A DNA stretch of 64,000 nt from Octopus bimaculoides. Its lineage: Eukaryota. A model generated the notes under the pieces. It was given only the letters and a program-made list of their open reading frames with translations. It did no database searches and had not been told where the DNA came from. The translations under genes were made by a program, and so were the position numbers. The stretch is taken from contig NC_068993.1 in assembly GCF_001194135.2 (NCBI RefSeq), positions 34,744,777 through 34,808,776 of the forward strand, read 5' to 3'. Below, piece by piece: positions 9,389-62,689 of this stretch (within the stretch, counting starts at the first letter, position 1; each line of letters opens with the position of its first letter).

Positions 9389-12094
9389 NNNNNNNNNNNN
9401 NNNNNNNNNNNNNNNNNNNNNNNNNNNNNNNNNNNNNNNNNNNNNNNNNNNNNNNNNNNNNNNNNNNNNNNNNNNNNNNNNNNNNNNNNNNNNNNNNNNN
9501 NNNNNNNNNNNNNNNNNNNNNNNNNNNNNNNNCAAGAAGGAGTACGTTTTGGACAGCTATTTTATAATCACTACAATTGTTTCCACCCAACGTGGTTCTC
9601 TATTATGCATCTGTTTGTTTGCATAATAAGATCCAGTTGTGTTTCCTCAGGTGATATTCAAGTGTTGTCTCTGTTAGTTTAAAATTTTCGACTTCAAAGC
9701 CATCCCATTCGTCCGTCTTGGTTTGAATTATGTAGCAGCTGGTAGATCCATGTTGTTTGCTGCCAGTGTGTGTTTGTTGGACTGCCAAGAGTGGTGGTGG
9801 ATGGTTGTTTTGGTACCGACCGAGCATTGACCTTGCACACACACACACACACACACACACACACACACACACACATATATATATATATATATATATATAT
9901 ACATAAAAGTTCAAATAAAAGTTACAAACGTCATTAAAGGATAATAAAATCCAATGAAAATACTGGTTAGTTACCTATTCAAAAAGTGTTGAATGTTACA
10001 ATTAATATTCGACTGTAAGATAACTAGATAAACCGTGGTTTATATATATTTAAAGATGAGAAAATATTTATTAATTAAAGAATTAGACAACATCTCTGAC
10101 AGCTGTTTCGATTCCAAATCTTTTAGAAATTAATTACCAAAATTAAAACCATTTAAAAGTCGAATCTTATCAGAGTTGGCTAAAGATATAAAATTATGTG
10201 TTAAATTCCTGTATATTGAGTATATTGCTCCAAACAGTTAACTAATAAAATCTGTTTGTAAAGAACGTAGTATAAACTTTACAAAGGGGAGGAAGGTAGT
10301 ATATTTATTGGAGTTATAATAAAAATAAGAATAGAGCAGTATAACCTTCGTTTACTAATATACGTTTACACGTTACTTATCTATAGCATTAGTACTTGTG
10401 CATATTATATTGTAATATACGTCAATTATACTCTTACACCTACTTTCGCATTTTCTTTTCTCAACATATATATATATGCATACACACACACACACACACA
10501 CACACACACACACACACACACACACACATCCATACTCTCTCACACCCATACACATACTCAGTTGAACACAATTATTAATATTCATATGTTTGTCTATTAT
10601 TTCTTTCTCTTCTTATATCTAAGACTGACTTTGGAAATTGAAATATTAACAGCAGGGTGTGGTAGCTTTAAAAATTACACGCATGGGCTATAAATATATG
10701 TGTCAATTGTACATATATATGCTTGTTTGAGTATTTGTATGAATATGTATACTTTTGGCAGTGTTTCTATATGTTCGTGCGTCTGGGTCATTTACAGGTA
10801 ACCTTTGTATTAAATTTATTTTCCTCATTGAAATGCTTCCTGCCTAATCAACATGATGCTGGGAAATACATCTAATATTACATTTTTACCGTTTGGTCTT
10901 TGCTAAAGGACTATGCGCTCAGTTAAGTGGAAACCGTCTTGTCAGTGTGAAGGACTGTGGTGCCTTATGTGTCTACACCACGCCCAGTGCTGTGTCTTTA
11001 ACCAGAAATATGGATACATCAGGAACCTCTGTGTTGTCATTCAGCACGAGAAAAATGATAGTTAAACATCCTTCAAGCTACTATCTACAGACTTTAAGAA
11101 GTAAAGAAACACTGAATAATGAAGTATAGTTTTATATTTTGTATGAAATAAAAAAAAAAAGGCTTTTATGTCTAGACTGATTTTCATCATGGATCAATTC
11201 AACCGGAGCTGATCTGAAACAAAATGGAGAAACAACAAACGTTTCCCTCACGGCGACGACAATGACGATGACCCCCTCCTTCTCCGTCCCTTATTACCGT
11301 CATCATCAACAGCAGCAACACCGTCATCATCATCGTCGTCCTCATCACTAATACCACCATCAGTAGCACCTGCCCTACCATCACCATCATCATCCTCATT
11401 AGCTGCAACACCGCCATGATCACCACTGTCATTACCACCACTACCAACAACAACATCTACAACAGTTCAACACGACAACTGAATATTGACACCTGAGAAA
11501 GGAATAAAATAATGAACTTTAAGTGATTTAAAAAGAACACTCTAACGGTTATATATATATATATATATATATATGTGTGTGTGTGTGTGTGTGTGTGTGT
11601 GTNNNNNNNNNNNNNNNNNNNNNNNNNNNNNNNNNNNNNNNNNNNNNNNNNNNNNNNNNNNNNNNNNNNNNNNNNNNNNNNNNNNNNNNNNNNNNNNNNN
11701 NNNNNNNNNNNNNNNNNNNNNNNNNNNNNNNNNNNNNNNNNNNNNNNNNNNNNNNNNNNNNNNNNNNNNNNNNNNNNNNNNNNNNNNNNNNNNNNNNNNN
11801 NNNNNNNNNNNNNNNNNNNNNNNNNNNTATATATATATATATATATATATATTATATTATATTATATTATATTATATTATATTTTTCCTAATGATAATAC
11901 TTCTTCCGTTTAGGTCGTCATTCCCTTGGTGTCCAAGGTCTTTTAGTCATACTTTATTTCAGGGATTCTTATCGTTTCCATATGAATATATATAAATGAA
12001 AAATCATTGGAAGTTTATTAGACAGAATCCAATAAATGTCATCAAATAAATGGAACAAGCTTTAATGGTAATATGGATTATTTATTTAATTTAA

Positions 12095-12208
12095 CCAGAC
12101 ATCTGTTTCTGTCGCAAAAGACCATATTAAGGTATACAATTGAAGAATATGTATTTCAATTAAAATAATACAAATTATTATATTAAGTCATTTGGGACTC
12201 ATCAGTGG
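12095..12208 (-). ncRNA. Candidate type I hammerhead ribozyme with long stem II (left arm copy)
   Basis: CCA-CUGAUGA-GUCCCAAAUGAC...GUCUUUUGCGAC-A-GAAA-CAGAUGU-C-UGG. Stem II pairs 10/12; there is an extra A before GAAA. Confidence 0.45.
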
Positions 12209-12504
12209 ATACTAATTAAATGTTTTAATATGTTATTTAAATAATATAAGTACGAATTAATTGAATTTATTACTTGAATAGAACAGGCTGGAGTATTACT
12301 TGAATAGAATAGGGCGGGAGTAATGAGAAGATAATAATACGAATCAAAGGAAGTGAATACTAATAAAGGTACGCTTGTAAGCTTCAGGTTTAGGATTTGA
12401 TTTGGTGAGTGAAAGAAAGAAATTAGAAAACGAAATCGTTATAATGATCACAAAGAAGAAAACTAAATGTACTAACTTTAAATATTAAAACATTTAATTA
12501 GTAT

Positions 12505-12618
12505 CCACTGATGAGTTCCAAATGACTTAATATAATAATGTGTATCACATTTGTTGAAATACATATTCTTCAATTGTGTGCCTTAATATGGTCTTTTGCG
12601 ACAGAAACAGCTGTCTGA
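12505..12618 (+). ncRNA. Candidate type I hammerhead ribozyme with long stem II (right arm copy)
   Basis: CCA-CUGAUGA-GUUCCAAAUGAC...GUCUUUUGCGAC-A-GAAA-CAGCUGU-C-UGA. Palindromic stem III ACAGCUGU; extra A before GAAA; stem I weak. Confidence 0.45.
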
Positions 12619-13620
12619 TTAAATTAGTTAAATAAATAATCCACATTACCCTCATTTATTTAATGACTCCGTCTAATAAATTGATTCTTCCAATGATTTA
12701 TATATATATGTATATAATATAATGTTATCCGATGTTTATTAAAACAGTCAATCGCTTTAAATTTGTGACCAGAATAAACAATCAGCTGGTTGATCTTCGT
12801 TAATGACGTCAGAGATGATTTAAAGATGAATTTGATTTTCGTTCTTTTCTCAACTGTTGCGAATCAAATGAAATTACAGTGCAGAAGAGAAATTCGGTGG
12901 GGCTGAAAAGTGGTAGGATTACAGCTTGCCAACAGAATTGGATTTCTTACATTAGCACAAATCATATGTATGTATGTATGTATGTATGTATGTATGTATG
13001 TATGTACGTATGTATGTGTGCGTGTGTGTATGTATGCGTATGTACATTTGTGTATAAGTATCTATGTGTGCAGCCTCATAGTTCCAAGTTAAGTACTACA
13101 GCGTGCCACTTCGTGCAAGTGTCTTCAACTATAGCCCCAATATATACAGTATACTGTTCCGTTCAAGTAACATCAACATAAAAATTACTCCATCTGGTTA
13201 GAAATAAATATTGTTTAATAGATACTGTATATATTTTTATGATGCATGCTGAGAAAGTAGAGATAAAGGAAATCCAGGTGAAGACCTACATCATCACTCC
13301 AAGCGATAAATCAAAATGTCAAAGGTGCAAAATTATTCATTTAATCAGGATGATATTCTATACAAACGGTAAATCCTAGGAAATCCATCAATTAACAAAT
13401 TGCTGCAATTATCACAAAGTTTAGTAACAAATGATGAACGCATGAAGATGATGGCATTACATAACTTTCTTACAGTTTATCAGTATTTGAAATGTCTGAC
13501 GAGATTGGTAGTGGTAACTTCATTAACTAATTAACGTTTAACAGTACATAAATTTATATTTATACACACCAATGTACTAACTGATGAAATGGTTCTACGA
13601 TCGCAAATTTTAATGGAGGG

Positions 13621-60952: not shown

Positions 60953-60981
60953 TGCACAATAACAATAATAATAATAATAAT

Positions 60982-61528
60982 ATGCCCGGATGCAGTACCA
61001 GGCAGTGGCTCTCATGGCTTCTGATCTTAATTGATTGGAAGTGATATCATGTACATTGTTTTGTCTTGGTATAAAAGATGGGCTACAGCAAATATTCTGC
61101 TTAATACCACAGATTTGCTTGTCAGTTGTTTGACCTTAACCAGTTGAGCATGTCCTTTGGTGGCTGACGATATGTGCATCTCTGTACATGAGCAGAAGTA
61201 GTGGGGGAGCATCATAGCTATGTGTTGAGAGGAATTCTTTGGGGTTTGAATAATTTACCTTTGGAAACATAGGTCTTTTGCTCAACATCCTTGAACAAAC
61301 CTTATTCAGGGACCTTTTGAGCGGGATGGGCTACTCGACCTGAAGAAAATTCTAACTGGGCCCCTGCGAGGTCATGCGCTGTTTATCTTGATATGAGATC
61401 ATCATGTCGCGCACATATGATTGTGCCTTGTGTACCCTTATCAGACGGGTAATCATGATGGGTATAATGGGCTTTGTATATTTTACCCCAGTGTCACTTT
61501 GATGGCATGCACTGCTCTCTCTCACTCA
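60982..61528. repeat. ~540-bp interspersed repeat, copy 3, inserted in the (TAA)n of the pseudo-LTR
   Basis: Reverse complement of 8521-9056; flanked on both sides by (TAA)n; absent from the mirror arm. Confidence 0.9.
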
Positions 61529-61653
61529 ACAATAATATTAATAATAATAATAATAATAATAATAATAATAATAATAATAATAATAATAATAATAATAATA
61601 ATAACATCGAAAAATACCTTAGGAATGAGAACCCAGGTTCGAAATTTCCCCAA

Positions 61654-61699
61654 GACACCTGAAGAAGGCGGGAGGGTACATCAGCCGAAATGTTGTGTT
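61654..61699 (+). ncRNA. Minimal type I hammerhead ribozyme in Penelope pseudo-LTR
   Basis: GACAC-CUGAAGA-A-GGCGG..CAGCC-GAAA-UGU-U-GUGUU. 5-bp stem I; stem II GGCUG/CAGCC (U supported by the mirror copy at 60050-60076); stem III AUGU, probably CpG-decayed ACGU. Confidence 0.7.
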
Positions 61700-62689
61700 A
61701 ACAACAAACAAGACGAGGACAAATATCCATCGAATGTAAATAATTCCTCATCTCTTAAATATAGAACTGAATTTAGACTGTTATCGGAAAGTGAGTAGCA
61801 TATGAGAGCCAACCTGAAGAAGAGCAATCATTTGTAGATATTCTGACGCATTGAAACAAAAAGTGAATAACATTGAATGTTTGTTTATAGAATACCTTAA
61901 CAGCGATAACTGCCGAAAAGTAGCAAGAATACTGAAATAATTACACTTGAAATGATATCAATGACAAAAAGCTACTACTTGAAAGTCTCAAAGTGATGGG
62001 GAAGTAATGACAAATCACTTTTAATGTGTATTAATTGAAGGAAAATTCGTGGTTAATAATCAATCTCTACAATATTAATCGAGTGGCGTTCATAAAACCT
62101 TAAGAAAGAAGATTAAGTTATACGGATGGATGGTGTGACTGCAGTCATACTGATTTCGTCATACTGATTATGTATGTAATTTTCAATGTCTTGCTCGCTT
62201 ACGCTTTGGTATTTCGCTGAATTTCTTTTGAGAACTATTAGGTCTTAGTAGACACAACATGTGGTCTATTTCTAGCATATTAAATGTCCACTTTACTGAT
62301 CAACTTCATGTACATAAAAATATAACTATTACATGTAACCAACTTCTGAATTTGTCTCTCAGCTTATTCTTTCCATATCATTTGATGGTATGATGTATAT
62401 TCGCTGACTTATTGTACTTTGTATTACACTTTACATGTACTTCACATTCATATTTTAACTGCTTTTTTATCCCTTACCTAAGATACATCTCTTTCACATC
62501 TCTTTTCTCTTATCATTCATGACATTACGTACCTTGACACCATTGACTTCTTCTACACTGATAAGCGCTTTTCTTCCCTATCTTTCACTGACCAAATTGA
62601 CCCCTACTTTCTTTAATTTTCTTTTTATAATTTTTAATCTTTAATACTTATCATCACTTTTTATCATATATTCTCACTTTTCCTATTGT

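Follow-up and report, generated by a model that had tools for sequence, protein, structure and literature searches.

Hammerhead motifs and probable Penelope-like element insertions in a 64-kb window of the Octopus bimaculoides genome

Do the short strings resembling hammerhead ribozymes that lie along both strands of an octopus genomic locus represent genuine motifs, and which kind of element has left them there? The locus is a stretch of 64,000 nucleotides (nt) of the Octopus bimaculoides genome (assembly GCF_001194135.2, contig NC_068993.1, positions 34,744,777 to 34,808,776; hereafter the window, always at its full length), in which an inspection of the letters alone (the sequence-only reading) had listed about 10 hammerhead motifs at 7 loci, ascribing them to Penelope-derived or retrozyme-like elements. 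With a probability that we put at about 0.85, the window contains old insertions of at least six unrelated families of endonuclease-containing (EN+) Penelope-like elements (PLEs), or of short non-coding units which these elements mobilise. Four of the motifs are intact and the others are mutational relics, while two of the listed loci are not hammerheads by definition. The evidence consists of the anatomy of the motifs, their excess over chance, the inverted architecture of the insertions, their association with (TA)n runs and their link to PLE open reading frames (ORFs).

Intact motifs and the question of chance

The full window was scanned on both strands with a series of descriptors, and the counts were compared with those from dinucleotide-shuffled windows. 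The hammerhead core was defined as C3 U4 G5 A6 N7 G8 A9, followed by G12 A13 A14, an A15.1-U16.1 pair and the cleavage site H17. Specifically, the descriptor asked for CUGANGA, a helix II hairpin, GAAA, a helix III closed by A15.1-U16.1, an H17 other than G, and helix I. The relaxed form accepted any helix II, provided that helix III was short or palindromic and that helix I had 4 base pairs (bp) or more, while the full descriptor of the minimal hammerhead ribozyme tolerated a bulge or mismatch beside A9 and a single mismatch within helix II. Four motifs have this core, at 9567-9655(-), 13731-13773(-), 15038-15100(+) and 48152-48288(-).

The obvious alternative is that such motifs are chance matches to a short and degenerate pattern in AT-rich, repeat-rich DNA. 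A loose descriptor lends this some colour, as it gave 5 matches compared with 1.37 per shuffle and 5 were reached in 21 of 200 shuffles; moreover, several of the listed sites break the strict rules and Rfam is silent at its gathering score. The stricter searches tell a different story. The strict compact descriptor matched 13731-13773(-) and 15038-15100(+) and nothing in 200 shuffles. Without any condition on helix II there were four matches (shuffle mean 0.15, maximum 2, n=300), the helix II insert folding closed from its ends in every one of them, and the full descriptor returned the identical four against a mean of 0.01 per shuffle (n=300). This is the shuffle control that the sequence-only reading had proposed, and it bears out the claim of minimal type-I hammerheads with a palindromic helix III. 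Partial matches are in excess too: compact arrangements of box 1, helix II and box 2 occur 4 times (0.13 per shuffle), and the combination of GAA, a palindrome and H occurs at 28 sites, compared with 14.0 +/- 3.8 after shuffling, an approximately twofold excess. Furthermore, 7 paralogous PLE loci have the homologous motif in the same position, and an unrelated intact element of the Hydra type also carries one (see below). As an account of the whole set chance is therefore extremely improbable; for the four intact motifs it is refuted, while it may hold for the sites at 16458 and 45441/45960.

All the letters that had been claimed at the listed coordinates are present as described, but the count itself needs revision. 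Two of the listed sites (13731 and 15038) are intact and others are relics, whereas 45441/45960 and 16458 fail the definition and 12095/12505 are atypical. The list was also incomplete, as it missed two intact motifs, 9567-9655(-), which lies outside the range that it covered, and 48152-48288(-).

The first intact motif, 9567-9655(-), has a helix I of 5 bp, a helix II of 6 bp and a palindrome half of 4, and reads aucac-CUGAGGA-(60-nt helix II domain with an A...G mismatch at 10.1/11.1)-GAA-ACAAUUGU-A-gugau. Its helix II insert closes from its ends with a predicted energy of -18.8 kcal/mol, and the element that carries it runs into an assembly gap at 9532. The second, 13731-13773(-), reads gucu-CUGAUGA-GAACCU/AGGUUC-GAA-AAUCGAUU-A-aggu and belongs to a 300-nt unit on the same strand which, with 58 nt of its own 3′ end in front of it, occupies 13653-14010(-) (direct repeats 13653-13710 and 13953-14010, 84% identical by self-BLAST) and whose 3′ end lies at the (TA)n run 13651-13659. 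The third, 15038-15100(+), matches the descriptor with ACCGGU as helix III and lies in an element that we call E2, and the fourth, 48152-48288(-), lies in element E4, has a helix II domain of 104 nt and matches the relaxed and full descriptors. The motifs at 13731 and 15038 have G-C at 10.1/11.1 and no extra nucleotide after A9. As had been noticed from the letters, helix III is repeatedly palindromic, and in all four intact motifs it is a perfect palindrome without a loop (ACAAUUGU, AAUCGAUU, ACCGGU and ACGCGCGU).

A helix III that lacks a loop cannot be closed by a monomer, and its pairing needs a second copy. Cofolding of two copies predicted an intermolecular helix III of 8 bp for three of the four intact motifs, with helices I and II present in all four, although any palindrome would give this result, so that it serves only as a consistency check. 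The 60- and 104-nt helix II domains and the A.G mismatch are variations inside a known kind, if slightly unusual ones. The four intact motifs are concrete candidates for cleavage tests, two of them with very large helix II domains.

Inverted insertions, (TA)n runs and relics

Self-BLAST delineates five loci with head-to-head inverted, 5′-truncated copies; the strand bearing the motif points outward in each, and a tail of 48-200 nt comes after the motif. E1 (11986-12713, both strands) has arms at 11986-12231 and 12482-12713 that are 79.7% identical, and both of its outer ends lie in (TA)n. In E2 (14595-15141, both strands) the arms at 14595-14816 and 14920-15141 are 89.6% identical, and the outer end of the left one is cut by the assembly gap 14374-14594. 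E3 (45368-46119, both strands), with arms at 45370-45685 and 45800-46117 that are 84.7% identical, has its left end at the (TA)n run 45354-45362. E4 (47963-48585, both strands) has arms at 48258-48372 and 48477-48585 with 81% identity; its minus-strand copy runs from 48372 to 47963, comprising the intact motif and a tail of approximately 190 nt that ends at the (TA)n run 47939-47961, while in the partner arm, 48477-48585(+), box 1 is mutated (AUGAUGA, 48562-48568) and the copy is cut by an (ACAT)n run. The fifth locus, element G (60006-61745, both strands), is a 5′-truncated Penelope/Poseidon-type PLE with an ORF remnant, a relic minimal hammerhead and an inverted partner, its arms being 60006-60307 versus 60808-60982 plus 61564-61744. 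Sites that the sequence-only reading had counted as separate motifs (12095/12505, 14636/15038 and 45441/45960) are in fact the two arms of such inverted repeats. Its claim that the loci are mutually unrelated holds, as BLAST among the window elements found no cross-matches, which indicates several unrelated families. Equal age of all the inverted repeats is ruled out by the arm-only identities of 80-90%.

Including the partial tandem at 13653-14010, 5′ truncation with an upstream partial copy is seen in five inverted pairs and one partial tandem. Of the 13 outer element ends, seven are no more than 6 nt away from a (TA) run of at least four units, while 3.9% of window positions lie within 12 nt of such a run. 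The exception to this preference is element G, whose endonuclease is of the type without a Zn-finger linker.

In the explanation that we favour, each unit carries a minimal type-I hammerhead motif 50-200 nt from its 3′ end, comprising CUGANGA, a helix II hairpin (16-104 nt), GAAA, a palindromic helix III that lacks a loop, and a short helix I, and the palindrome may pair with that of a second copy to form a double hammerhead, in which we infer that self-cleavage would take place. Most insertions are severely 5′-truncated and head-to-head inverted, with 3′ ends outward and often in (TA)n. Since a purified PLE protein acts on both DNA strands, cutting and extending each (PMC11167929), such pairs may arise when reverse transcription is primed on both strands of one target and each cDNA stops early. 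In RNA transcribed from an inverted pair, pairing with its complement would sequester the sense motif, therefore the pairs are better regarded as insertion by-products than as working double hammerheads.

The foldbacks might also be understood as derivatives of DNA transposons similar to miniature inverted-repeat transposable elements (MITEs), with long terminal inverted repeats, TA targets and merely incidental hammerhead strings. Such a description would suit inverted repeats that extend over the whole length of 465-750 bp, contain no ORFs and adjoin TA-rich sequence at their ends, as well as the lack of a canonical hammerhead in E3 and E1. It does not suit the intact canonical motifs in the arms of E2 and E4, expected by chance about 0.01 times per window, nor the (TA)n runs that flank the elements where a single duplicated TA would be expected, and the same inverted layout, which is the published signature of PLE insertion, surrounds the PLE coding remnant of 60006-61745 and recurs in three of its paralogs (L001, L003 and L004). 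Because two foldbacks hold intact motifs and a PLE coding remnant shows the same layout, a MITE-like origin is very highly unlikely.

The short elements invite a second comparison, with the retrozymes lacking long terminal repeats (non-LTR retrozymes), i.e. tandem repeats of approximately 150-450 bp with type-I hammerheads that are processed to circular RNAs. A 58-nt copy of its own 3′ end does indeed stand ahead of the 300-nt unit in 13653-14010, the units measure 230-400 nt and are low in GC, within the published range (PMC7229834), and a 2026 preprint derives animal retrozymes from the repeats that flank PLEs. Nevertheless, self-BLAST shows no tandem array in the window with two or more hammerheads on the same strand, the 58-nt direct repeat flanking the 13731 motif being the only one of its kind; the paired motifs stand on opposite strands; and the motifs belong to the minimal PLE type, with no contacts between loops 1 and 2 seen by inspection. 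As the defining tandem array with at least two same-strand motifs is absent, we consider a retrozyme nature quite improbable, and the term ‘retrozyme-like’ that had been attached to these loci is not borne out.

Insertion of PLEs at (TA)n runs, which we favour, has a consequence for the assembly. No motif spans an assembly gap and no claim made here needs continuity across one, but at 11 of the 17 gaps in the window a (TA)n run directly adjoins one edge or both (6214-7065, 11603-11827, 15268-15935, 28492-28501, 38381-38557, 44912-45353, 46980-47938, 48949-49043, 53070-53589, 58612-59544 and 63473-63543). The gaps probably hide microsatellites, the same sequences that PLEs target, and since the assembly seems to break at these runs, PLE insertions are probably under-assembled here.

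A scan that allowed one defect in the core or the palindrome found no site in the window beyond the four intact motifs and rescued no relic, therefore each of the remaining listed sites must carry at least two defects. Three of them are supported as relics by their context. The motif at 14636-14698(-) is the mutated partner of 15038 in the other arm of E2, where ACCGGU has become ACCAGU and there is a further mismatch at 1.1. The relic minimal hammerhead of element G, 61654-61699(+), reads gacac-CUGAAGA-A-GGC..GCC-GAAA-UG-U-U-guguu; AUGU replaces ACGU (C15.2 to U) and helix II has 3 bp, whereas the consensus of its family is canonical. That this site might not be a hammerhead at all is ruled out by the paralog consensus, which has the 4-nt ACGU rather than a long helix III. 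The third, 46452-46525(-) (the 46460 site), is a probable relic with CUAAUGA (G5 to A, a departure from the core) and GAAA-CCC-A-GGGU-A, a 9-bp helix II behind a 2x2 mismatch, ACCC-A-GGGU as helix III, a helix I interrupted by a mismatch, and a tail of approximately 15-25 nt up to the (TA)n run 46426-46437.

A further relic-like motif, 10096-10178(-) (the 10109 site), which the earlier list did not include, reads CUGAUAA-GAUUC...GAAUC-GAAA-CAGCUGU-C, with the palindrome ACAGCUGU, a weak helix I and a tail of about 60 nt ending at the (TA)n run 10041-10049. It departs from the core (G8 to A) and is not recovered by the one-defect scan, and its context is what speaks for its status as a relic. 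The strings at 10098-10109(-) and 12604-12615(+), in otherwise unrelated elements, are identical (GAAACAGCUGUC), i.e. they share the same 8-nt helix III palindrome.

The arms of E1 hold atypical hammerhead-like motifs, 12092-12211(-) and 12502-12621(+), with CUGAUGA, GAAAC-AG(C/A)UGU-C and again the palindrome ACAGCUGU. Both have a closed helix II domain of approximately 89 nt (GUC...GAC), an extra A before G12 and a helix I paired at 5 of 6 positions, and their competence as hammerheads is doubtful. The strings in the arms of E3, at about 45441-45535(-) and 45957-46050(+), are non-canonical: box 1 has 8 nt, CUGAA(G/U)GA (CUGAAGGA and CAGAAUGA), an additional GGUUGCAACC hairpin stands ahead of GAAA, and helix I is absent. 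By definition these are not hammerheads; because both arms carry the 8-nt box, the extra nucleotide is older than the duplication. Finally, 16458-16497(-) is a partial match with CUGAAGA, a 4-bp helix II and GAAA, without helix III or helix I and with no 16.1/17 in register; self-BLAST finds no repeat context for it, and it is either a chance match or a heavily decayed relic.

Coding remnants, relatives and points of doubt

Two of the loci had been described as lying directly 3′ of ORFs of the GIY-YIG type, and this is correct for 61654 and 46460. In element G the coding remnant, 60385-60672(+) (...LPYVKGLSE...CVYSIPRSCGRLYKGETRPLKIRVDEHRKA...), is truncated within the end of the reverse transcriptase (RT), and contains a premature stop. 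A 647-bp repeat has been inserted 3′ of it, at 60958-61604; once this insertion is discounted, the 61654 motif lies approximately 340 nt 3′ of the ORF. In the inverted 5′-truncated partner, 60006-60307(-), box 1 is found at 60071, while box 2 has been lost by a 20-nt deletion. Further copies of the inserted repeat, whose family measures about 650 bp, lie at 8410-9085 and 21685-22249 (approximately 81% identity), and the copy in element G ends in a (TAA)n run at 61540-61600.

The ORF of element G has 30 relatives with at most 71% identity, one of them named Octopus vulgaris and nearly all of them from long contigs of one ENA assembly. All seven paralogous loci compared (L001-L007) carry a motif homologous to 61654 about 400-500 nt 3′ of the ORF, with the consensus CUGAAGA-A-GGCCGG..CGGCC-GAAA-CG-U-U. 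Judged by these letters, which include one additional nucleotide behind A9, the G10.1-C11.1 pair and CG as palindrome, the motif of this family is a textbook PLE minimal hammerhead. One paralog (L002) has an RVT_1 ORF directly upstream, the three named above with the same layout carry inverted partial copies upstream, and decay is visible in three copies in which CCGAAACG has become CCAAAACG. The assembly from which L001-L007 derive, ERZ21867824, is part of a metagenome collection and includes contigs of up to 0.96 Mb with octopus-like PLE paralogs; as a whole it appears to be largely host cephalopod DNA.

The second coding link is to the Hydra clade of PLEs. The endonuclease remnant 46613-46858(-) (...ISWRILE...CKLCLVE...N...CLH...LLANW) is degenerate upstream, where it is then cut by a (CA)n run and by the gap 46980-47938, which removes the sequence beyond it; the 46460 relic lies approximately 95 nt 3′ of this remnant. 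A second remnant at 57700-58094(-) (ORF 57795-58094; FKGRYSQHMHSF...IKWTIEDRA...C*LCLREK...N...CCH...LLANF) has the same motif layout and no hammerhead on its 3′ side. In both, CxxC and CxH flank the conserved E and N, while the linker and DKT are found in the relatives only. Standard searches were of little help with these sequences: at E<=0.1 Pfam gave no GIY-YIG match for the three endonuclease-like ORFs of the window, all of which are remnants of the endonuclease end, it gave no match for nine relatives, and a word-indexed protein search with the Hydra-type remnant had no match. An exhaustive HMMER search with 57795-58094(-), on the other hand, yielded at least 1304 cluster representatives, which include RT-endonuclease proteins of 615-690 amino acids (aa) with RT motifs (seen by inspection in P0087 and P0161), DKT, CxCx4-5C and CxxC..E..N..CxH. 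The assignment to the Hydra clade is based on this motif layout and on the HMMER relatives, not on a phylogeny. In an intact member of the Hydra type (L013-L015) a hammerhead lies 170 nt past the stop codon; its helix I has 7 bp and its helix III is ACAAUUUGU. One copy of this member (L014) has two direct hammerhead copies 2568 nt apart. Among other relatives of the 57795 remnant (L008-L012), the contigs were too short or had no hammerhead 3′ of the ORF.

A position next to a PLE is therefore seen directly for the hammerheads of 61654, 46460 and L013-L015. For the units without ORFs, a protein query with the concatenated stop-free translations of all elements retrieved no paralogs, and BLAST of the elements against the octopus-like loci compared gave microsatellite matches only. 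Their PLE origin is suggested by the motif, the architecture and the (TA)n context. It is conceivable, if unlikely, that the ORF-less units of 230-400 nt (E1-E4, 13653-14010 and the element of 9567) are dedicated non-autonomous parasites of cephalopod PLEs of the Hydra clade, recognised through a module of hammerhead plus tail. If so, some of them would have unusually large helix II domains (60-104 nt) and, as a tolerated variant beside the core, an A.G pair at 10.1/11.1, head-to-head insertions would give rise to long hairpin transcripts that might feed into small-RNA pathways, and the connection recently proposed between animal retrozymes and the repeats that flank PLEs would extend to molluscs.

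Several observations weigh against the attribution to PLE hammerheads. (i) Two intact motifs (9567 and 48152) have an A.G mismatch at 10.1/11.1, a position usually occupied by G-C. (ii) RNA from an inverted repeat would contain one sense motif and its complement, so that a long hairpin is favoured over the hammerhead fold. (iii) Neither an ORF nor a paralog was found for five of the families. (iv) The only family alignment available, nine sequences related to 61654, shows no covariation, with 65.6% of cells paired compared with 65.3% after shuffling. (v) An Rfam search of the window reported no family at its gathering score, and no hammerhead family at E<=10 in the whole window or in 12000-16700. 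Regarding the fourth point, registers that were slid as a control paired at 10-41%, one pair had changed on both sides and the copies are decayed, and the covariation count is uninformative here; the consensus of the family has a canonical core.

The Rfam result, another control suggested by the sequence-only reading, came out negative although intact motifs are present, and reveals a problem of the models. Sub-threshold matches to hammerhead families arose only in searches of 76-91 nt. Specifically, Hammerhead_1 aligned end to end at 15039-15099 with 22.6 bits (gathering score 34) only when 91 nt were searched alone, and Hammerhead_3 gave 15.3 bits (gathering score 48.5) in a mis-registered alignment at 13737-13784, over the 13731 motif. 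Since the intact motifs at 15038 and 13731 score only below threshold, the curated Rfam models are insensitive to the minimal PLE hammerhead class. Annotation of PLE hammerheads in cephalopods therefore needs a descriptor search, as scans based on Rfam miss the class entirely.

Other features of the window can be described briefly. A dispersed repeat family, possibly a short interspersed element (SINE), has copies at 14016-14337, 2786-2978, 3247-3358 and 55587-55859 with 70-80% identity, the first of which adjoins the upstream end of the 13653-14010 unit. Open frames of a non-LTR retrotransposon, unrelated to the hammerhead elements, occupy 26079-27840(-), and 26079-26522(-) matches Pfam RVT_1 (E=5e-13). 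The longest open frame of the window, 43093-44052(+), may be a host exon; its 320 aa include a hydrophobic stretch, and Pfam gives it no significant match. An open frame at 49520-49921(+) (…KWVPKCLNADQKRIRV…), which may resemble mariner-type transposases, has no Pfam match at E<=0.1. A near-perfect hairpin of approximately 220 nt at 54354-54575(+) ends at a gap (54576) and is probably another foldback repeat; the scans found no hammerhead boxes in it, and its only match is a sub-threshold one to a plant microRNA (MIR2670, 49 bits versus 117).

Comparison with known systems

Non-LTR retrozymes, newt satellite 2 and Schistosoma Sm-alpha are similar to the window motifs in that they have type-I hammerheads in short AT-rich units, with a helix III that is weak or palindromic, and these hammerheads would be expected to work in dimeric form. 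Those systems, however, consist of tandem arrays with canonical loop-loop contacts, whereas the motifs described here are of the minimal PLE type and unarrayed.

Element G resembles Penelope/Poseidon-type PLEs in its GIY-YIG C-terminus (CVYSIP.SCG..YKGET) without a Zn-finger linker, in the position of its motif in the 3′ untranslated part, in the inverted truncated copy upstream and in not lying at (TA)n. It differs from them in its truncation at the RT end, the premature stop, the 647-bp interruption and the change of C15.2 to U in its motif. PLE insertions in general are often 5′-truncated with an inverted truncated copy upstream, favour (TA)n and carry a tail (PMC8557442). The Hydra clade described by Craig et al. 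(2021, PMC8557442), for which few molluscan families are listed, comprises short, hammerhead-bearing elements inserted at (TA)n, with DKT, a CxCx5C linker, and CxxC and CxH flanking E and N. Both Hydra-type remnants of the window share the CxxC and CxH around E and N, their relatives share DKT and CxC-x4/5-C, and the short length, the hammerhead near the 3′ end and the insertion at (TA)n (as at the end of the 46460 element) agree as well; the window copies differ in being dead fragments without RT.

The closest counterparts are the minimal hammerheads of metazoan PLEs (Cervera & de la Peña 2014, PMC4209133), for which action in dimers that pair by the palindromic helix III has been proposed, and which cleave poorly in vitro and are mostly isolated motifs of truncated elements, sometimes forming opposite-strand pairs. 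In a PLE whose protein has been purified, the hammerhead needs that protein for cleavage, and insertion in vitro can proceed without the hammerhead (PMC11167929). Differences from the published set are that helix II spans 60 and 104 nt in two intact window motifs, which also have A.G where G10.1-C11.1 is described as highly conserved, that the window palindromes have 6-8 nt compared with a minimum of 4 nt, and that covariation at the family level is not demonstrable with the sequences at hand. The likenesses comprise canonical boxes, helices in type-I order, a helix III that is a palindrome without a loop, a short helix I (4-7 bp), an enlarged helix II and, in some copies (the 61654 family, 9567 and 48152), an extra nucleotide after A9, as well as the many unrelated sequence families per genome, the isolated motifs and the opposite-strand pairs 100-700 bp apart. 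All features of the window motifs have already been published for PLE minimal hammerheads; they are real but ordinary members of that class, and their significance beyond annotation is slight.

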